64,000 bases of DNA from Macrostomum lignano (GCA_002269645.1 NIVC01001908.1:62001-126000), one strand, 5' to 3'; counted from the first letter of the stretch, positions 3,298 through 60,913 are shown. Program-made: numbers and translations. Notes: generated by a model from the sequence alone, not told the origin.

Positions 3298-16389
<13,092 letters not shown>

Positions 16390-32200: not shown

Positions 32201-33817
32201 CGATTGTTAAAAACTTACTGGACGTTACTAATAGCACATATTGGCACAAAAGTGATGATCAGCTGAAATTGCAGGACAGAGCTCCTGTTATATGCTGCTA
32301 CAGCCTGCAACATGTCGCAAATTGATAGTGCATACAGAAGCTGCGCTGTAGGCACAGTCCTGGAACTTTTCTGACGCATTTGCACCACTTCAACAACGAG
32401 AGCGACATGTCGCGAGAGCGACCATACAAGCACGGAAACATGTGCGAATCATGATGATAATGATGATGCTGATGATGATGATGATGAACTAGTTAAGTAG
32501 ATTACCTGACACATAAACAGGGTTTACATTGGCAAGTGTCCCGATTTGAGCTCAGAGTGGTCTCACAGTCGGTCGAGAGTTCCAAAGCACTCAACCTGTC
32601 CTCGAATTAAGCCCATGCAGCCCGCATACTCGAGCATTTTTGCACACTTCAACTATTCCTGCAACGGCATTTAGCGAGCGGCTTCTCAAAGCTTTCTGAG
32701 GGGGGGATCGGATTATTTAAGAATATCCCACGGGACTCTCCGCTTGATGCTTGCGAGCTGAAATCAAAACCGATTGTTGCAAATCTCTCTCGTATCCTCC
32801 ATCAGCTGGGATTTCATATTTCAGCTATAGAAAATTTTCCAGCAGTTTCAGTTCCACATGCCCAGGCTAGAAAAGATAGTTTAAAAAATTGAAATTCGCT
32901 CGCTTTTCAAATGTTTTGTTCAAAAAAGCGCCTCCAGGACTTACCATGCCAACAGCCAGCGATTCTCTCCAGCAAAATAGCAGCTGAATGCCTCATAGAA
33001 ACAGAACAACAGAAGCTGGCTTTCAAGGATTGAATAGTCTCAGTGCCTGCAGTCGACTCCACATTAAAATAATACTTCAATATTTAGATCGGCGGGGCTG
33101 ATTGTGGCGTGCAGCCTCTATTCAACGGTTGCGTGCGTCATACAGGCAAATTTGCATACAGAAAAGCAGAGATCAATTGCCGTCAATTTTGCCTGGCTTT
33201 CAGTTACCTATTCAGCTTTGTGCATTTTTTTTCATCTGCGCTCGCAGTTACGCCTCATCGCTATAATTAAAAGGAATGAATGATAGCTCAACTAAAATAC
33301 AACATCTCGCTCGGCTATTACTCTCTCCTAATCGCTGGCTTCAAAATATTGCTTCAAAGCTAAACGTTTCTTCAAAAATTGTATTTTTCAAATCGTCACT
33401 TAATTGATCCGATAATTGGCGAGAAAGCCTTTGAGATGACAGGGTCTTCATCCCACAGCATTTTTTTGTCAATGGGCTTCAAAATGATACTAAATTTTCG
33501 TACGTTATAGCCCGTATCTCATAAAAAACTTGGCGAAAATCAGTGCTGTGCATTGCAGACTAAATAAAGCTGGAAAACTTAACTGCACACTTTTAAACTT
33601 GGAGGTAAAAGCTGTTATCGGTAAAGATCAAGAAAATTAATTTGTACCGACGAATGCAAGCTGCGTTTACTAATGTGCACCGACTAAAACAGCCGTCGGG
33701 ACTGCACAGACCTCTGCATAAAAGTATATTTTCGTCACATTTGATTGATGATTGACAGAGAGCGGCCAATAAGACTCTAACAGTTTAACTTCGCAAAAAG
33801 GTGTTATCTGAGTTAAT

Positions 33818-34377
33818 TCAGTCATTCTCGACCTCACCATCCAGTATTGGCGACCTTTTGCCCCAACGAAATACTCCACTTTGCCGCTTGCCCCAACGGA
33901 ATACACCACTGGGCCGCTTGCCCCAACGGAATACTCCACTGGGCCGCTTGCCCCAACGGAATACTCCACTGGGCCGCTTACCCCAACGGAATACTCCACT
34001 GGGCCGCTTGCCCCAACGGAATACTCCACTGGGCCGCTTTCCCCAACGGAATACACCACTTTGCCGCTTGCCCCAACGGAATGTAGTACCCCGTTTGGCG
34101 GTTGAACTCGGCAAAAACGTGTCCTCCTCCATTGAGCCGTCGCGAGCCGTGCTCAACAGATCCGCAACGTCGTCATCGTCTGCAATTACAAATCAGCGAT
34201 TAAGACGTCTTTGTCAAATTAGCATCGAAGAGCTGGAATAGATTCTAAGGCCTGTCAGATTGGCACAACGCACGAGAGCTTAGACCTACCGATCTCAGAC
34301 TCGGCTTGAACAATGGCAGTTGAACAGAAGAGCAGCGCGAGAAGCGCAAGCTGCATCAGCGGGCTTCGGTTTGACAT
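33818..34377 (-). CDS. Neuropeptide precursor (149 aa) encoding eight C-terminally amidated FRWamide peptides
   Basis: Exon 1 (34290-34377): MSNRSPLMQLALLALLFCSTAIVQAESEI signal peptide, phase-1 GT donor. Exon 2 (33818-34179): acidic spacer, then KR-GTTFRWG-KR, QSGVFRWG x2 and PSGVFRWG x5, each flanked by KR. Confidence 0.93.
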
Positions 34378-35889
34378 CTCAAGGCGGTAGTTCGATGCAA
34401 GTTCGCACACAGTATTGGACACGCGCTTGTACCTAAGTGAGGGCGATAAAGTGACAAGAAGTTACATGCCAATTCTTTCGATACCAGCAAAAAATAACAT
34501 CACTGAAAAACGACTTAAAATGTACCTGGTTCTTCAAAAGCAGGCGCTCAAGTCCTCAAGACACTTAAATATGCCTAAGATACCTCAAGAAACTTACGGA
34601 TCTAAACAATTATAATACGAGCTAGTTATTCAAATGCCTGGTGCGAGAGCAAACGCTACAAGGGAAAAAGCGTGATTGCCTTTTAAGGTTGAACAAATCG
34701 TCGACCATTTCTGGCCACAGCGGGTTGGGGCGCGCTCGAGGCTGGTTGGATGGCCAGCCAACCGAAAGCTGTGCTCTTGCTATCTCCATCCCTTTCTCTC
34801 TTTTTGTGTGCATTTATTCCCTAAAAATATCGTCCTCCAATAGTAGATCGGAAGGCTGGTAATTGTACTCGTAATTGGAAACCTTTTGCCAACTGGCCAT
34901 AGACGGCGAGAGTTTCGTGTCCATGCGCGCTCACGCACACACACACACACACACACAACAGACACTACAAGTAATTGTCCTACACTCGCGAATAACAAGC
35001 TACATGTATTAGCTGGCGTTCAAGAGTGGTCTGTTCCAAAGCTCTAGCTGCTTCCTTCCTGATTGGCGATTAGAGTGGAGTCCGGACAGCCCATGCATCC
35101 TCACTCAGTGATTTTTGCTGTCGGACTTTTATAAGTTTATAAATCGCATAAGCATCAGAGAGAGGGACATCCCGGGCTTGTCAATCAAAGCTTTTTGACG
35201 CCTAATTCGACAACAATGAGACTAGTAGCAAATTTTTTGTAAGAGCCGTGGATTAATGTGGCCGCATGGGACTCTACTCAGCTGGAAAGCTTCGGATCAA
35301 GCATGAGAAGTGACGTCTCATTTTTAACTGTAGCTAACTTTTTGCAGCCAATTTACTTTAAAATTTTTTTGAATTCTGAAGCCGAAAAATCGAACTCATA
35401 CAGGGAAATTCTGTCACGGGGTTCACGCTGACCTCAAGCAATTGCTTCATTCTTCGACGTACAGGAAGTTCGCTTCTTCATCGGCAGTTTCAAAACTTGT
35501 CAGGGTAACGTCTTCAGACGATGCACTGGAGACGCTCCTGTAACAGATTAGTAGTTGTCATGAGAGGCTTTCAGGATAAAATTTTCTACAGCCTTAATAA
35601 TCTTATTAATTACATATTCATTATTCAGCAACATCTTTAAAACGTGTCAACTTACTACTTTTTCCTTACCCATTTTCGATACGCATTATTTAAAACTCAT
35701 TCAATTAATTCGCTGACCAAAACAAGATCCCAGCAACTTTCGACCGACTTAAAGAAATATACAAACTTAAAGTGTGCAGCGATACTACTCGTAGTTGTAT
35801 ACGAAAAAATTAACTATAATGGCTTATATCGTTAATCGCGGTTGTAGAAAGTTTAAATGAAGATTTATTAATTAATGAGCTATCCTCAG

Positions 35890-39749: not shown

Positions 39750-42330
39750 ATCTAATGTAGATCTGTTGCTAACTGATAGAAGCGATGCGTGATTAGATCC
39801 ACGAGTAGATCTGTTGCTAATTGATAGAAGCGTGATTAGATCCATGAGTAGATCTGTTGCTAATTGATAGAAGCGTGATTAGATCCACGAGTAGATCTGT
39901 TGCTAATTGATAGAAGCGTGATTAGATCAATGAGTAGATCTGTTGCTAATTGATAGAAGCGTGATTAGATCAATGAGTAGATCTGTTGCTAATTGATAGA
40001 TGCGTGATTAGATCCATGAGTAGATCTGTTGCTAATTGATAGAAGCGTGATTAGATCCATGAGTACATCTGTTGCTAATTGATAGATGCGTGATTAGATC
40101 CATGAGTACATCTGTTGCTAATTGATAGAAGCGTGATTAGATCCATGAGTAGATCTGTTGCTAATTGATAGATGCGTGATTAGATCCATGAGTACATCTG
40201 TTGCTAATTGATAGATGCGTGATTAGATCCATGAGTAGATCTGTTGCTAATTGATAGATGCGTGATTAGATCCATGAGTAGATCTGTTGCTAATTGATAG
40301 ATGCGTGATTAGATCCATGATTAGATCTGTTGCTAATTGATAGATGCGTGATTAGATCCATGAGTAGATCTGTTGCTAACTGATAGAAGCGTGATTAGAT
40401 CCACGAGTAGATCTGTTGCTAACTGATAGATGCGTGATTAGATCCACGAGTAGATCTGTTGCTAACTGATAGATGCGTGATTAGATCCACGAGTAGATCT
40501 GTTGCTAACTGATAGAAGCGATGCGTGATTAGATCCATGAGTAGATACTTGAGTAGATCTGTTGCTAACTGATAGAAGCGTGTTTAGATCCACGAGTAGA
40601 TACTTGAGTAGATCTGTTGCTAACTGATAGAAGCGTGATTAGATCCACGAGTAGATCTGTTGCTAACTGATAGATGCGTGATTAGATCCATGAGTAGATA
40701 CTTGAGTAGATCTGTTGCTAACTGATAGAAGCGTGATTAGATCCATGAGTATATACTTGAGTAGATCTGTTGCTAACTGATAGATCCATGATTAGATCCA
40801 TAAATAGATCTGTTGCTAATTGATAGATCCATGATTAGACCCATGAGTAGATACTTGAGTAGATCTGTTGCTAATTGATAGATGCATGATTAGATCCATG
40901 AGTAGATACTTGAGTAGATCTGTTGCTAATTGATAGAAGTGTACCGATTAGATCAATTATTAGATCTGTTGCTAATTGATAGATCCATGATTAGACCCAT
41001 GAGTAGATACTTGAGTAGATCTGTTGCTAATTGATAGATCCATGATTAGACCCATGAGTAGATACTTGAGTAGATCTGTTGCTAATTGATAGATGCATGA
41101 TTAGACCCATGATTAGATCCATAAATAGATCTGTTGCTAATTGATAGAAGCGTGATTAGATCCATGATTAGATCCATAAATAGATCTGTTGCTAATTGAT
41201 AGAAGTGTACCGATTAGATCAATTATTAGATCTGTTGCTAATTGATAGATCCATGATTAGATCCATGAGTAGATACTTGAGTAGATTTGTTGCTAATTGA
41301 TAGATGCATGATTAGATCCATAAATAGATCTGTTGCTAATTGATAGATCCATGATTAGACCCATGAGTAGATACTTGAGTAGATCTGTTGCTAATTGATA
41401 GATGCATGATTAGATCCATGAGTAGATACTTGGGTAGATCTGTTGCTAACTGATAGAAGCGTGATTAGATCCATGATTAGATCCATAAATAGATCTGTTG
41501 CTAATTGATAGAAGTGTACCGATTAGATCAATTATTAGATCTGTTGCTAATTGATAGATCCATGATTAGTTCCATGAGTAGATACTTGAGTAGATCTGTT
41601 GCTAATTGATAGATGCGTGATTAGATCCATGATTAGATCTGTTGCTAATTGATAGATGCGTGATTAGATCCATGAGTAGATCTGTTGCTAACTGATAGAT
41701 GCGTGATTAGATCCATGAGTAGATACTTGAGTAGATCTGTTGCTAATTGATAGATGCGTGATTAGATATATGAGTAGATCTGTTGCTAATTGATAGATGC
41801 GTGATTAGATCCATGAGTAGATCTGTTGCTAACTGATAGATCCATGATTAGACCCATGAGTAGATACTTGAGTAGATCTGTTGCTAATTGATAGATGCAT
41901 GATTAGATCCATGAGTAGATACTTGAGTAGATCTGTTGCTAATTGATAGAAGTGTACCGATTAGATCAATTATTAGATCTGTTGCTAATTGATAGATCCA
42001 TGATTAGACCCATGAGTAGATACTTGAGTAGATCTGTTGCTAATTGATAGATGCGTGATTAGATATATGAGTAGATCTGTTGCTAATTGATAGATGTGTG
42101 ATTAGATCCATGAGTAGATCTGTTGCTAACTGATAGATGCGTGATTAGATCCATAATTAGATCTGTTGCTAATTGATAGATGCGTGATTAGATCCATGAG
42201 TAGATCTGTTGCTAATTGATAGATGCGTGATTAGATCCATAATTAGATCTGTTGCTAACTGATAGATGCGTGATTAGACCCATAAGTAGAACTGTTGCTA
42301 TCTAGATAATTAACTGAAGCGTGATTAGAT
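39750..42330. repeat. 43-bp GATC-rich satellite with 55-bp variant units
   Basis: GATCCATGAGTAGATCTGTTGCTAATTGATAGATGCGTGATTA; the central region carries a 12-bp ATACTTGAGTAG insertion variant. Confidence 0.97.
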
Positions 42331-42864
42331 TCTAGATGGATTTACCATGGATGATAAATATGACGCTTAACTTTACACCAACAGGGTAGGTAAATATGTG
42401 GGTAAGTACATGTAACTGTGTTAAAAAATTACTTAAATTAAAAGCATTGTCGTGAAAAAATTGCTTGTCATTGTCTAAAAGTTGTACTAAACAGAATGCT
42501 AGATAGTGGATGCTTAAAAACTTTTTTACTTGAAGTAAATCATTGTTCAATACAATTTAGAAATAAATACAAACACAATAGAGCTTAAGGGGCATTGACT
42601 AAGCAGAAAAGACTACAAGCTACAAGTACACAATAACTATGGGAGCAATTCTTAGACTTGGCCAAAATAGTTTTTTCAATCAGAAAATGCTGTACCTAGT
42701 AAAGACAAAGCCAGTAACAGTTCAAGTCAATAGTGGAAACAGTAACTGTTTAGACAATTTTAAAAATGCTTAACAAAAACAAACAAAAAATTTACGCCAT
42801 TCAAACATGGGTTTTCCCATGGGTCAGGCCTCACACAGAGGCCGTGTTGGGACCGGGACTTACA

Positions 42865-43338
42865 GAGGTCATGTGGGGTCAGGATTCTCAGACACAGGTC
42901 ATGTGGGGTCAGGATTCTCAGACACAGGTCATGTGGGGTCAGGATTCTGAGACACAGGTCATGTGGGGTCAGGATTCTCAGACACAGGTCATGTGGGGTC
43001 AGGATTTTCAGACACAGGTCATGTGGGGTCAGGATTCTCAGACACAGGTCATGTGGGGTCAGGATTCTCAGACACAGGTCATGTGGGGTCAGGATTCTCA
43101 GACACAGGTCATGTGGGGTCAGGATTCTCAGACACAGGTCATGTGGGGTCAGGATTCTCAGACACAGGTCATGTGGGGTCAGGATTCTCAGACACAGGTC
43201 ATGTGGGGTCAGGATTCTCAGACACAGGTCATGCGGGGTCAGGATTCTCAGACACAGGTCATGTGGGGTCAGGATTCTCAGACACAGGTCATGTGGGGTC
43301 AGGATTCTCAGACACAGGTCATGCGGGGTCAGGATTCT
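42865..43338. repeat. 30-bp minisatellite immediately downstream of the Tudor gene stop
   Basis: CAGGTCATGTGGGGTCAGGATTCTCAGACA, about 15 units. Confidence 0.97.
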
Positions 43339-43368
43339 TAGACGGCACCCCACAGCAAACATTCTCCA

Positions 43369-51078: not shown

Positions 51079-53440
51079 GATCTCTCTCTCTCTCTTTCTC
51101 TCTCTCTCAGATGAGTGAGAAGATGAGCTAGAGAGAGAAGAGAGGAGAGAAGAAAGGGGAGAGAGGAGTGGAGGGGAGATTAGAGGAGAGAGGTGAGGAG
51201 ATGAAAGGAGAGAGAGGAGATGAGAAGAGGGGAGAGGAGAGATGAGAGGAGAGTGAGCTGAGAGTGGAGATTGGAGAGAGGCTGACAGTGGAGAGAGACT
51301 GAGAGTGAGCTGAGAGTGGAGATTGATGGAGAGGCTGAGAGTGGCCGAGAGAGGCTGAGAGTGAGCTGAGAGTGGAGATTGGAGAGAGGCTGAGAGTGGA
51401 GAGAGGCTGAGAGTGGAGATTGGAGAGAGGCTGAGAGTGGAGATTGGAGAGAGGCTGAGAGTGGAGATTGGAGAGAGGCTGAGAGTGGAGAGAGGCTGAG
51501 AGTGGAGAGAGGCTGAGAGTGGAGATTGGAGAGAGGCTGACAGTGGAGAGAGACTGAGAGTGAGCTGAGAGTGGAGATTGATGGAGAGGCTGAGAGTGGC
51601 CGAGAGAGGCTGAGAGTGAGCTGAGAGTGGAGATTGGAGAGAGGCTGAGAGTGGAGAGAGGCTGAGAGTGGAGATTGGAGAGAGGCTGAGAGTGGAGATT
51701 GGAGAGAGGCTGAGAGTGGAGATTGGAGAGAGGCTGAGAGTGGAGAGAGGCTGAGAGTGGAGAGAGGCTGAGAGTGGAGATTGGAGAGAGGCTGAGAGTG
51801 AGCTGAGAGTAGAGATTGGAGAGAAAGTGAATTGAGTGGCTGGGTGAAAGTGAATTAAGTGGTTGAGTGGCTGGGTGAAAGTGAATTAAGTGGTTGAGTG
51901 GCTGGGTGAAAGTGAATTAAGTGGTTGAGTGGCTGGGTGAGATCAGTGAATTAAGTGGTTGAGTGGCTGGGTGAAAGTGAATTAAGTGGGTGAGTGGCTG
52001 GGTGAAAGTGAATTAAGTGGTTGAGTGGCTGGGTGAAAGTGAATTAAGTGGGTGAGTGGCTGGGTGAAAGTGAATTAAGTGGGTGAGTGGCTGGGTGAAA
52101 GAAAAACTTCCAGCTCGAAATCTATTCGCATTTCTGGCCAGCTGCTCAGCAGTTTGAGGATTTACTCCTAAAAATCATCGCGCAGAGAGTCGGCAATCAA
52201 AGCACCTTCAGCTATTTCTGCTGCTGGCTCGAATCGGCATCGCTTCGCCTCGTTTTTTACTTCCCAATGCATCTCTCTTAATTCCAGCTGCTTTGTCAGA
52301 TCTGTGTGGCCGGCTCACATGGAAAACACCATCAGCAGTCTGCCTCACTGAGCCATTGCACTTCAAGTCTTCATTGCGGACGATGCACTTCCAATAATTG
52401 CAGCCAGCTTTGCCTCCGTTCCGCCCTAGAAGATATCCAAACGAGGATACAAGGAGATCACCACCGCGTTTACTAATACCGCGTTTCAGCTCAAAATGTT
52501 CTTGCTGCGACTCAAGCTGCACTTCAACGAGTGGCGTCGGATCCTGTAGTCCATCGTAATTTCGATCCGCGGCAGCACCGGCGTGGACAGCTGCAGGTGG
52601 ATCGGCGGCAGCACCGGCGTGGACAGCTGCAGGTTGGATCGGCGGCAGCACCGGCGTGGACAGCTGCAGGTGGATCGGCGGCAGCACCGGCGTGGACAGC
52701 TGCAGGTGGATCGGCGGCAGCACCGGCGTGCATGGACTGCTGGTAGATGCATGGGCGGCGGCTGTCGGCACCTACCAAGTTTGGTATCATGTATTTCATT
52801 TCGACAATTTTTTCACTGACATACACATACACTGCATACATATGCCTTTTCTTAAAAAGGGATAGAAAAACGATAATGTGATCAATTACTTTGCATAACT
52901 TTTCTCATTTACAGCGGGAGCAAATCCAGATAAATGAAGCGTCGTCTTCTAGAATCTGACGATACTCCTTTTGGCTTATGCCTGAACCACATATTTGGTG
53001 CTGCCATTGACTGCAATCATCACATTGCAAAGCTTGCTGTCGAGTGCTCACACACTTTCTACAAATGACAACAGATGTCTTGCATCAGAGAAATTTTGAA
53101 TGAGAATAACTATTCGCCGTTTTTTTCTTTATCAAATTTTTAACAGCTTCCGTTCCATGCCACTGTTTTTAGTTAAGCTTTCTCATTTTAGGTGTATATT
53201 GTAAAATAGTTTGTTAAAATGATGAAAGACCCATATACATGCAGCGCTTTATTATAACAAATGTTAACGGACAGAGAAGTTGTCCATACAGAGGCAGCTC
53301 CCCAGTCCCCCAGCTCCCTAGTCCCCACCCCACTCCTCATCCCCACCCCATTTCCCAGCAGACGAACAGTTTTAGAAGGAAAGGGCGTTTCGTCTACTCA
53401 GCAGACGAACTGTCGGCAGACGAATGAACTGCAGGAAACC
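50140..53440 (-). mobile_element. Mutator/MULE-like DNA transposon relic with FLYWCH zinc-finger ORF
   Basis: ~150-bp inverted termini (50140-50300 / 53270-53440). Imperfect 9-bp TSD GGCCTAGGG/GGCCTCGGT. ORF SKRGGDLLVSSFGY...YWKC..R....C...V...H followed, after a frameshift, by LARNANRFR. Confidence 0.7.
50900..52100. repeat. Composite microsatellite/minisatellite block: (TCAC)n, (CA)n, GA-rich 16/24-bp units, 31-bp units
   Basis: Seen directly inside the MULE relic. Confidence 0.95.
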
Positions 53441-58731: not shown

Positions 58732-58769
58732 GTAAGAAGAATGTGCTCTTAATTAGACTGGGATTAATC

Positions 58770-60180
58770 CATTCCCACCTGCTATAATTCTCTACCTGAC
58801 CCATTCCTACCTGCTAATATTCTCCACCTGACCCATTCCTACCTGCTAATATTCTCCACCTGACCCATTCCTACCTGCTAATATTCTCTACCTGACCCAT
58901 TCCTACCTGCTAATATTCTCTACCTGACCCATTCCTACCTGCTAATATTCTCCACCTGACCCATTCCTACCTGCTAATATTCTCCACCTGACCCATTCCC
59001 ACCTGCTATAATTCTCCACCTGACCCATTCCTACCTGCTAATATTCTCCACCTGACCCATTCCTACCTGCTAATATTCTCCACCTGACCCATTCCTACCT
59101 GCTAATATTCTCTACCTGACCCATTCCTACCTGCTAATATTCTCTACCTGACCCATTCCTACCTGCTAATATTCTCCACCTGACCCATTCCTACCTGCTA
59201 ATATTCTCCATCTGACCCATTCCTCCTACCTGCTAATATTCTCCACCTGACCCATTCCTACCTGCTAATATTCTCCACCTGACCCATTCCTACCTGCTAA
59301 TATTCTCCATCTGACCCATTCCTCCTACCTGCTAATATTCTCCACCTGACCCATTCCTACCTGCTAATATTCTCCACCTGACCCATTCCTACCTGCTATT
59401 ATTCTCCACCTGACCCATTCCTACCTGCTAATATTCTCTACCTGACCCATTCCTACCTGCTAATATTCTCTACCTGACCCATTCCTACCTGCTAATATTC
59501 TCCACCTGACCCATTCCTACCTGCTAATATTCTCCACCTGACCCATTCCTACCTGCTAATATTCTCCACCTGACCCATTCCTACCTGCTAATATTCTCCA
59601 CCTGACCCATTCCTACCTGCTAATATTCTCCACCTGACCCATTCCTACCTGCTAATATTCTCCACCTGACCCATTCCTACCTGCTAATATTCTCCACCTG
59701 ACCCATTCCCACCTGCTAATATTCTCCTCCTGACCCATTCCTACCTGCTAATATTCTCCACCTGACCCATTCCTACCTGCTAATATTCTCCACCTGACCC
59801 ATTCCTACCTGCTAATATTCTCCACCTGACCCATTACTACCTGCTAATATTCTCCACCTGACCCATTCCTACCTGCTAATATTCTCCACCTGACCCATTC
59901 CTACCTGCTAATATTCTCCACCTGACCCATTCCTACCTGCTAATATTCTCCACCTGACCCATTCCTACCTGCTAATATTCTCTACCTGACCCATTCCTAC
60001 CTGCTAATATTCTCTACCTGACCCATTCCTACCTGCTAATATTCTCCACCTGACCCATTCATACCTGCTAATATTCTCCACCTGACCCATTCCTACCTGC
60101 TAATATTCTCCACCTGACCCATTCATACCTGCTAATATTCTCCACCTGACCCATTCCTACCTGCTAATATTCTCCACCTG
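58770..60180. repeat. 32-bp minisatellite between rpl39 and coq10
   Basis: ACCTGACCCATTCCTACCTGCTAATATTCTCC, about 43 units. Confidence 0.97.
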
Positions 60181-60271
60181 AGCTACGCAACCTTTTTCAG
60201 CACTCTACTGCTGTCGCTGCCTAACCTTTTTTACCGGCCTCCTCTGCGGTCCCAAGAGGTCGACTATTAAG

Positions 60272-60913
60272 ATGAACAAGATAAAGGCGAATCTTTTGTT
60301 GCTGCGCCAGCGTCGCAGTTTGTCAACTTCAATGAAATCGCCGACTTCAACTCCGGTGGCTACAATGCGCTACGCTGAGCGTCGCCTTCTCGGCTTCAGT
60401 CGGGAGCAGATGTTTGCGGTAGTGTCCGGAGTTGAGCACTATCACAGATTCGTGCCCTGGTGCACAGGTAGCCAAGTTGAAGATCGCCGTCAGCTTGTTG
60501 ATGTTGCTAATTTTGGCCTACCCGGCGCTGCCGGTGTCAGCGGGCCAGGCGAACAATTCACTGGCCGGCTAAGCATCGGGTTCCCGCCCTTGTTGCAGCA
60601 GAGCTACAGCTCCGTAGTCACGTGCTGCCGGCCTCAGCTTGTTCATTCGCGTTGTACAGACGCAAATCTGTTTCGTCTCCTAGATACAACTTGGCGATTT
60701 CATCCCGGCTTGAGTGGCCGGCCAGCCACTTGCATACTCGATTTCGGCGTTGAATTCGCTTTTCAAAGCAGTTTGCACACCTCCTTAGCAGATCTGTTCT
60801 TTGATCGGGTGGTCACCGCCATGGTGTCTGCGTTCCTGCGCGAGGCCGGGCGGCGTTACGGGCCGGAGAGTGTAGGGCCGCAGCGGCCTACTGTTCTGGT
60901 GTACAAGAGATGA
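60272..60913 (+). CDS. COQ10: Coenzyme Q-binding protein COQ10 (START domain), mitochondrial
   Basis: YAERRLLGFSREQMFAVVSGVEHYHRFVPWC...LSIGFPP...YSSVV...LFRLLDTTWRF...FEF-like FAFQSSLH..LADLFFD. Arg/Ser-rich N-terminal presequence; AATAAA at 61481. Confidence 0.95.
   Translation: MNKIKANLLLLRQRRSLSTSMKSPTSTPVATMRYAERRLLGFSREQMFAVVSGVEHYHRFVPWCTGSQVEDRRQLVDVANFGLPGAAGVSGPGEQFTGRLSIGFPPLLQQSYSSVVTCCRPQLVHSRCTDANLFRLLDTTWRFHPGLSGRPATCILDFGVEFAFQSSLHTSLADLFFDRVVTAMVSAFLREAGRRYGPESVGPQRPTVLVYKR

Follow-up and report, generated by a model that had tools for sequence, protein, structure and literature searches.

The flatworm Macrostomum lignano carries a gene for a predicted precursor of FRWamide peptides, located on the minus strand at positions 34377-33818 of a 64,000-nt stretch of contig NIVC01001908.1 (assembly GCA_002269645.1), hereafter the window, to which all coordinates refer. 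The coding region consists of two exons with a predicted product of 149 amino acids (aa). Judged from its sequence, the locus is a real two-exon gene for an amidated neuropeptide prohormone and not a chance open reading frame (ORF) in a minisatellite. It is probably functional and, judged by its peptides and the layout of the precursor, a member of the spiralian [V/L/I]-F-R-[F/Y/W]-amide group of prohormones (npp-4/LFRFamide/RYamide, sNPF-type). Its most likely counterpart in this group is npp-4, with Trp standing where npp-4 has Phe/Tyr.

Gene structure and predicted product

Exon 1 encodes MSNRSPLMQLALLALLFCSTAIVQAESEI plus one extra base; its 3' end reads GAGATCG and is followed by the donor GTAGGT. 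The coding exons sum to 450 nt (88 + 362) and therefore join in frame, the phase-1 junction (G followed by AC) yielding Asp30. A stop codon lies in frame approximately 87 nt upstream of the ATG (Table 1). Read heuristically, the N-terminus is signal-like: its hydrophobic core, LALLALLFC, reaches a peak Kyte-Doolittle mean of 3.1 over nine residues, V-Q-A precedes Glu26, and an identical signal peptide is carried by the paralogue P0002, described below. The sole Cys of the precursor sits within the signal peptide.

The spacer before the first peptide is 32 residues long. Each of the eight units that follow is preceded by KR and ends in G-KR, with GTTFRW present once, QSGVFRW twice and PSGVFRW five times, and an FRW-amide end is predicted in all eight copies. 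At the DNA level, units 3, 5 and 6 are identical, and units 4 and 7 are each one synonymous base away. A first-pass annotation of this DNA had described a signal-peptide exon joined in phase to an exon with eight peptides in this 1/2/5 split and had taken the gene to be of flatworm origin; every one of these elements was recovered on the minus strand, and the locus is that of M. lignano NIVC01001908.1.

Table 1. Elements of the FRWamide precursor gene and the tandem array that overlaps it (positions in the window)
Feature	Position	Strand	Details
Coding exon 1, 88 nt	34290..34377	-	Start codon 34377-34375, signal peptide, first acidic-spacer residues; ends phase 1
Predicted signal peptide, residues 1-25 (MSNRSPLMQLALLALLFCSTAIVQA)	34303..34377	-	Arg4 in n-region; likely cleavage before Glu26
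Intron, 110 nt, GT...AG, phase 1	34180..34289	-	Acceptor TTGTAATTGCAG, then AC
Coding exon 2, 362 nt	33818..34179	-	Acidic spacer, eight peptide units, acidic tail, TGA at 33820-33818
Acidic spacer, exon-2 part (DDDDVADLLSTARDGSMEEDTFLPSSTA), then first KR cleavage site	34091..34179	-	
Unit 1, GTTFRW-G-KR	34064..34090	-	GTTFRW-amide, predicted [M+H]+ 766.400
Unit 2, QSGVFRW-G-KR	34034..34063	-	(pyroGlu)SGVFRW-amide, predicted [M+H]+ 861.437; uncyclised 878.463
Units 3-7, PSGVFRW-G-KR x5	33884..34033	-	PSGVFRW-amide, predicted [M+H]+ 847.457
Unit 8, QSGVFRW-G-KR	33854..33883	-	Three synonymous core changes (TTT, AAA, AGG)
Acidic C-terminal tail SPILDGEVEND	33821..33853	-	
30-bp tandem array, 7.5 copies, 93% matches	33858..34082	.	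Tandem Repeats Finder (TRF); DNA-level view of the peptide units

The window is rich in minisatellites, so the other arrays offer a natural control for the one that encodes the peptide units. TRF reported 27 distinct arrays in the 64 kb, and in 11 of these the period is a multiple of 3. In six-frame translations, G[KR][KR] recurs periodically within an open frame in a single array, that of the FRWamide gene, with seven copies; none of the other 26 arrays in the window has this motif in an open frame, and one has it twice in a stop-ridden frame. A degenerate DNA pattern for FRWG-K-R occurs eight times, against 0.02 occurrences expected from shuffles. Among the eight units, the FRWGKR core differs by five substitutions, every one of them synonymous; of the 54 possible single changes, 12 would be (rough P 5e-4). 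The amino-acid differences (Pro/Gln; GTT in unit 1) are confined to the N-terminal X-S-G-V part, the part in which bioactive peptide families usually vary. The near-identity of the DNA of units 3-7 points to a recent multiplication of the 30-bp unit, through slippage or unequal exchange.

Public annotation and genomic copies

The best protein match of the precursor is an M. lignano 'hypothetical protein' (P0001, 129 aa), whose annotated locus on NIVC01001908.1 matches the window at 100% identity across 20,560 bp. A second gene copy, identical over 560 bp, is carried by contig NIVC01004577.1, and both genomic copies hold eight units; the M. lignano DV1 line has duplicated chromosomes (PMC5730564). 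The GenBank models PAA47094.1 and PAA62704.1 (BOX15_Mlig026077g1 and g2; UniProt A0A267ENZ8) agree with our structure in the N-terminus, the exon 1-exon 2 junction (P0001 reads AESEI, then DDDDV, across it), the C-terminus and the stop, and contain six units, not eight, over the identical 560-bp span. The Mlig_3_7 annotation had RNA-seq and de novo transcripts as its sole sources, with TransDecoder used to build it (PMC5730564). As it is purely transcript-derived, the GenBank models provide indirect evidence for a spliced transcript. The earlier expectation that repeat masking would hide the gene holds in part: GenBank already lists two models of it, but they are named 'hypothetical protein' and are two units short.

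Two further M. lignano proteins in UniProt, A0A1I8J6K9 (P0002) and A0A1I8HF14 (P0155), which we take to be models of the older ML2 assembly, both contain the 5' leader, signal peptide and spacer of the gene. They have RAASAGREKR in place of the first peptide, and P0155 continues into retrotransposon (peptidase A2) sequence. This paralogous locus looks like a decayed or disrupted copy, or a model from error-rich sequence.

Probable placement in the npp-4/LFRFamide/RYamide group

We searched 1.8 billion representative proteins exhaustively with HMMER, using the precursor as query, and retrieved 291 hits. Most of them were LRLamide, FVRIamide or MIRY/MIRFamide sequences or unrelated 10-residue repeats, matched through their periodicity and not through homology, and were set aside. 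Two groups deserve attention. The first comprises mollusc LFRFamide precursors (P0032, Candidula LFRFamide-1) and annelid 'RYamide' precursors (P0145, which is Platynereis AEE25645.1), the latter mixing VFRYa, LFRWa and VFRFa and bearing a conserved PHVPFRFG at the end. Mollusc LFRFamide and annelid RYamide are now treated as lophotrochozoan sNPF-type peptides (PMC6389622; PMC8557429), the Platynereis RYamide having been re-named sNPF (PMC8557429), and sNPF-type peptides and receptors have been reported in Schmidtea mediterranea (PMC7314547). The second group consists of FRWamide-only precursors and is considered in the next section.

Within the phylum, a close counterpart is Smed-npp-4 (Collins et al. 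2010), an FLP gene related to FRFamide/GNFFRFamide that is regarded as the sNPF-type peptide gene of flatworms. It gives rise to SSVFRFa, SVAFRFa, RGVAFRFa, GSVFRYa and QSVFRYa, several of them confirmed by mass spectrometry, the last four in direct tandem with only G-KR between them (PMC2953531 supplements). This list bears out the statement in the first-pass annotation that npp-4 peptides end in VFRF/VFRY. The M. lignano precursor resembles Smed-npp-4 in its signal peptide followed by an acidic spacer, in its peptides of 6-7 residues with an x-S/G-V-F-R-aromatic-amide pattern (QSVFRYa and QSGVFRWa), in their direct tandem arrangement with only G-KR between, in the N-terminal Gln of some copies and in having no cysteine motif. 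It differs in ending all eight copies with Trp, where Smed-npp-4 has Phe/Tyr, in the near-identity of these eight copies as opposed to five diverse ones, and in an extra Gly between Ser and Val. Furthermore, in Smed-npp-4 the signal peptide is directly followed by one peptide and nothing comes after the last one; the M. lignano gene has an acidic tail.

The likeness extends to the mollusc and annelid members, which are multi-copy precursors of x-[L/V/I]-F-R-[F/Y/W]-amides of 4-7 residues, including pyroglutamate forms (QGSLFRFa). The annelid members already hold LFRWamide and IFRWamide copies, and LFRWamide has been described in annelid RYamide/sNPF precursors (PMC6389622). The short peptides themselves fit this group, GTTFRWa, QSGVFRWa and PSGVFRWa standing beside SSVFRFa and QSVFRYa of npp-4 and beside GSLFRFa, VFRYa and LFRWa. 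Unit spacing is 10 residues in all seven intervals of the M. lignano array, 10 and 9 in Smed-npp-4, and 10, 10, 9, 10 and 10 in LFRFamide-1, tandem spacing in the mollusc precursors being 9-10 residues. On the other hand, RY, RW and RF ends occur side by side in annelid RYamide precursors, which finish with PHVPFRFG, and several mollusc precursors have a C-terminal [SG]FHWG; the M. lignano precursor has neither motif. We placed the gene in the npp-4/sNPF-type group because it combines a strict 10-residue spacing with no Cys motif, as do Smed-npp-4 and mollusc LFRFamide.

Several observations weigh against this placement, or against a functional gene, and temper both. No Pfam family was matched in a search with the precursor. 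The annelid C-terminal PHVPFRFG was not found in the M. lignano precursor; it is likewise missing from Smed-npp-4 and the mollusc members, and therefore does not define the family across phyla. The assignment draws on four to five shared residues of a 6-7-residue peptide together with the layout, which is not enough to prove orthology. The closest single peptide matches are annelid FRWamides: GKGVFRWa and DSPVFRWa agree with the M. lignano peptide in five of seven C-terminal positions, and SSVFRFa of Smed-npp-4 agrees in four of six comparable ones. Should M. lignano possess a further gene for FRF/FRY-amides, the FRWamide gene would be a paralogue and not the npp-4 orthologue. Lastly, from position 34435 downstream the genomic copies match at 100% identity for about 2 kb (32490-34435), including non-coding DNA, so their comparison yields no evidence of selection; the gaps that MAFFT placed inside the array in this comparison are alignment artefacts.

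Word-indexed protein searches gave 14 candidates with the precursor as query and nine with Smed-npp-4, but such searches lack the sensitivity that short repeated motifs require; that no other M. lignano relatives appeared among these candidates therefore means nothing. Intron phase was also considered as a link of the gene to PrRP/sNPF genes and was set aside: the phase-1 intron follows the signal peptide and does not lie within a peptide, and sNPF and PrRP genes show limited similarity of structure (PMC7314547).

Relation to annelid FRWamide precursors

An unlikely but serious alternative is that the gene, while encoding a real precursor, is the orthologue of the annelid FRWamide precursors, which would make up a spiralian FRWamide family of their own, distinct from npp-4/sNPF and with a separate receptor. 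The second group of HMMER hits comprises Urechis unicinctus QUP52037.1 together with a Capitella protein and five or more further sequences, all unnamed, with E-values (1e-13 to 1e-9) similar to those of the LFRFamide precursors. In the annelid precursors (QUP52037.1; Capitella teleta ELT90794.1), nearly every copy ends in FRW-amide, as all copies do in M. lignano. The best peptide-level matches to PSGVFRWa come from this side (GKGVFRWa, DSPVFRWa, PSSVFRWa and SPSVFRWa), and FRWG occurs in none of 51 S. mediterranea prohormones, W-ending copies thus being atypical of flatworm npp-4.

The architecture of the precursors argues for the npp-4/sNPF-type group instead. A C-x3-C-x(6-10)-C-x-C motif precedes the first peptide in seven of the eight annelid-type precursors (P0038, P0040, P0063, P0068, P0090, P0128 and P0151), with a variant in the N-terminally truncated eighth (P0078), and the M. 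lignano precursor does not have it. The annelid-type spacers vary between 9 and 52 residues and the peptides vary in length, whereas the M. lignano spacing is strictly 10. As a minor point, the Capitella coding sequence is a single exon, while that of M. lignano is interrupted by its phase-1 intron after the signal peptide.

We regard as rather improbable a broader scenario in which FRWamide would be an old spiralian system common to annelids and the early-branching flatworm Macrostomum, distinct from sNPF/npp-4, with its own receptor and a Trp-amide selectivity switch, and with a copy number that varies between alleles or strains (six versus eight units) by slippage.

The first-pass annotation had described the gene as a W-ending, possibly undescribed flatworm member of one of these families. 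In spiralians a W end is no novelty for this group of peptides: LFRWamide copies are found in annelid RYamide/sNPF precursors (PMC6389622; P0145), and FRWamides in Urechis (PMC7737342) and Capitella. The FRWamide precursor of Urechis unicinctus is expressed in the larval apical organ and in ciliary-band nerves at settlement (PMC7737342). The paper describing it calls FRWamide Urechis-specific (PMC7737342); at least seven further precursors share FRWamide copies and the N-terminal Cys motif, and on these shared sequence features FRWamide extends beyond Urechis to a larger family with one or more other annelids in it, Capitella among them. The Capitella teleta precursor, CAPTEDRAFT_185359 / ELT90794.1 (KB310768.1; L003 3001-3911), is listed as a 'hypothetical protein' and labelled in UniRef as a C-type lectin domain protein. 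Its annotated intron is spurious, since read-through adds SSPAVFRWGRS as a sixth copy and reaches a stop earlier.

Number of peptide units

A real gene that encodes six peptides and not eight, with 60 nt of the array removed by splicing or with the eight-unit array being an assembly error, is an explanation to which we assign a low probability. It would account for the only public protein (P0001, 129 aa), which has six units across the same 560 bp, and the 149-aa eight-unit product was not found in a collection of approximately 15 billion proteins. We examined every placement of a 60-nt gap that yields the 129-residue protein: none of the 119 has GT-AG, GC-AG or AT-AC ends. The six-unit model is thus either a collapsed short-read transcript or a shorter allele, and not the product of an intron. 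As regards an assembly error, two independent contigs carry eight units each, with identical sequence. Near-identical 30-nt units are readily lost when transcripts are assembled de novo from short reads and mapped with BLAT, which would be consistent with a collapse of the six-unit transcript.

Over the 250 bp that immediately precede the gene (34436-34685), the two genomic copies show 11 mismatches, the nearest difference being at 34459. This sharp boundary of identity, about 60-80 bp upstream of the start codon, is possibly the edge of a conversion tract.

Minisatellites of the window and the case for a coincidental ORF

Far less probable is that the locus is a non-functional minisatellite with a coincidental ORF and 'signal peptide', or a decaying pseudogene that is transcribed but unused. 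The genomic setting lends this some plausibility. Approximately 15% of the M. lignano genome consists of tandem repeats (PMC5730564), and the window alone holds 27 arrays. The FRWamide array is open in five of six frames, another 30-bp array in the window bears an annotated but implausible 200-aa ORF, and the paralogous locus looks decayed and interrupted by a retrotransposon. Against it stand the periodic G-KR signature, unique among the 27 arrays, the signal-peptide exon joined in phase through canonical splice sites, the exclusively synonymous substitutions in FRWGKR, the match of the encoded peptide to a known bioactive family and the identical splice in the transcript-based GenBank model.

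The density of minisatellites in the window is very high, with examples at 12165-13932 (27 bp x65), 39757-42300 (43/86 bp, 2.5 kb) and 58769-60181 (32 bp x44), and 27 arrays in 64 kb are consistent with the reported genome-wide proportion of tandem repeats. The other 30-bp array with an annotated ORF lies at 42862-43343 (16 copies, 98% matches), within a minus-strand ORF of 200 aa (42760-43362) built of RILTPHDLCL units. This ORF is annotated as a gene in GenBank (L002 1016-1618), has no signal peptide and no cleavage/amidation signature, and is probably spurious. The same region gave a second tblastn match with 30-nt periodicity (42829-43308); its RILTPHDLCL / QVMWGQDSQT units are without G-KR, and it was rejected as a peptide gene.

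Luqin and NPY/NPF

The first-pass annotation had left open whether the gene belonged to the npp-4-type or the luqin family. The npp-4-type reading is the one we favour, and to a luqin-type (RWamide) precursor we give hardly any credence, its one attraction being the C-terminal Arg-Trp-amide known from echinoderm luqins and common to ambulacrarian luqins (PMC7041311). The statement that RWamide luqins are ambulacrarian, and that protostome luqins end in RF/RY, agrees with the same source. Luqin precursors carry one or, rarely, two peptides by the signal peptide, the motif WRPQGRF (spiralian), WRPH (flatworm) or KFMRW (echinoderm), and a C-terminal Cys-x10-Cys (PMC7041311). The M. lignano precursor instead has eight peptides after a 32-residue spacer, has none of these motifs, shares one to two of the last seven residues, and has no C-terminal Cys in its tail, where luqins have a pair 10 residues apart. 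As parasitic flatworm luqin precursors are also without this pair (PMC7041311), its absence alone is not decisive. NPY/NPF was ruled out: these precursors contain a single peptide of 36-40 residues with an RPRF/RPRY-amide end, and an intron interrupts the Arg codon of this RF/RY end (PMC7314547), whereas the M. lignano peptides have 6-7 residues and the sole intron follows the signal peptide.

Predicted processing, function and array evolution

According to the established prohormone pathway, the signal peptide would be removed on entry into the secretory pathway, a PC2-type convertase would cut after each KR, and a carboxypeptidase would then trim K and R. The exposed Gly would be turned into a C-terminal amide by peptidylglycine alpha-amidating monooxygenase, and the N-terminal Gln of the two Gln-initial copies would cyclise to pyroglutamate. 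Each precursor molecule is thereby predicted to yield five PSGVFRW-amides, two pQSGVFRW-amides and one GTTFRW-amide. A pc2 homologue exists in M. lignano and has an RNA interference phenotype (PMC4490696).

For the function of the M. lignano FRWamides we infer from relatives that the peptides may have as their target an sNPF/FLP-type G-protein-coupled receptor located in neurons, muscle or ciliated epidermis. Flatworm FRF/IRF-amides are myoexcitatory. Mollusc LFRFamide/sNPF peptides act on feeding and energy balance (PMC6389622), and Platynereis RYa changes ciliary beating (PMC7737342). As for the array, it has probably expanded recently, the 30-bp unit having undergone unequal crossing-over or slippage, and selection would have kept the FRWGKR core.

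Other features of the window

Among the large ORFs of the window that were tested, only one showed a clear conserved domain: the plus-strand ORF at 60272-60913 (213 aa) has a Pfam match to Polyketide_cyc (PF03364, E 8.7e-17), which is a lipid-binding domain of the START-like, COQ10 type. A weak match to the FLYWCH zinc finger at 52208-52771 on the minus strand remained below threshold (17.4 bits against a cut-off of 23.6) and overlaps a 36-bp tandem repeat at 52564-52730.

Significance

In the searchable literature we found no mention of the peptide strings or the gene identifier and no M. lignano neuropeptide catalogue, and the gene may have been described earlier. With W-ending members known in annelids and the family known in flatworms, the gene is no surprise to a specialist, and the picture of neuropeptide evolution is unchanged. 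Naming it does correct a public record that now reads 'hypothetical protein' and is two peptide copies short. It also carries a warning: repeat masking and short-read transcript assembly can hide or shorten multi-copy peptide genes, and the Capitella FRWamide model is similarly damaged.

M. lignano is a transgenic, regeneration-capable flatworm model, for which the gene supplies a promoter that may be neuron-specific and, for physiological work, a defined peptide. The roles of its relatives lie in feeding and energy balance in molluscs, in muscle in flatworms, and in ciliary beating and larval settlement in annelids. The gene likewise adds a flatworm data point to the question of lophotrochozoan sNPF-type ligands and receptors (PMC8557429).

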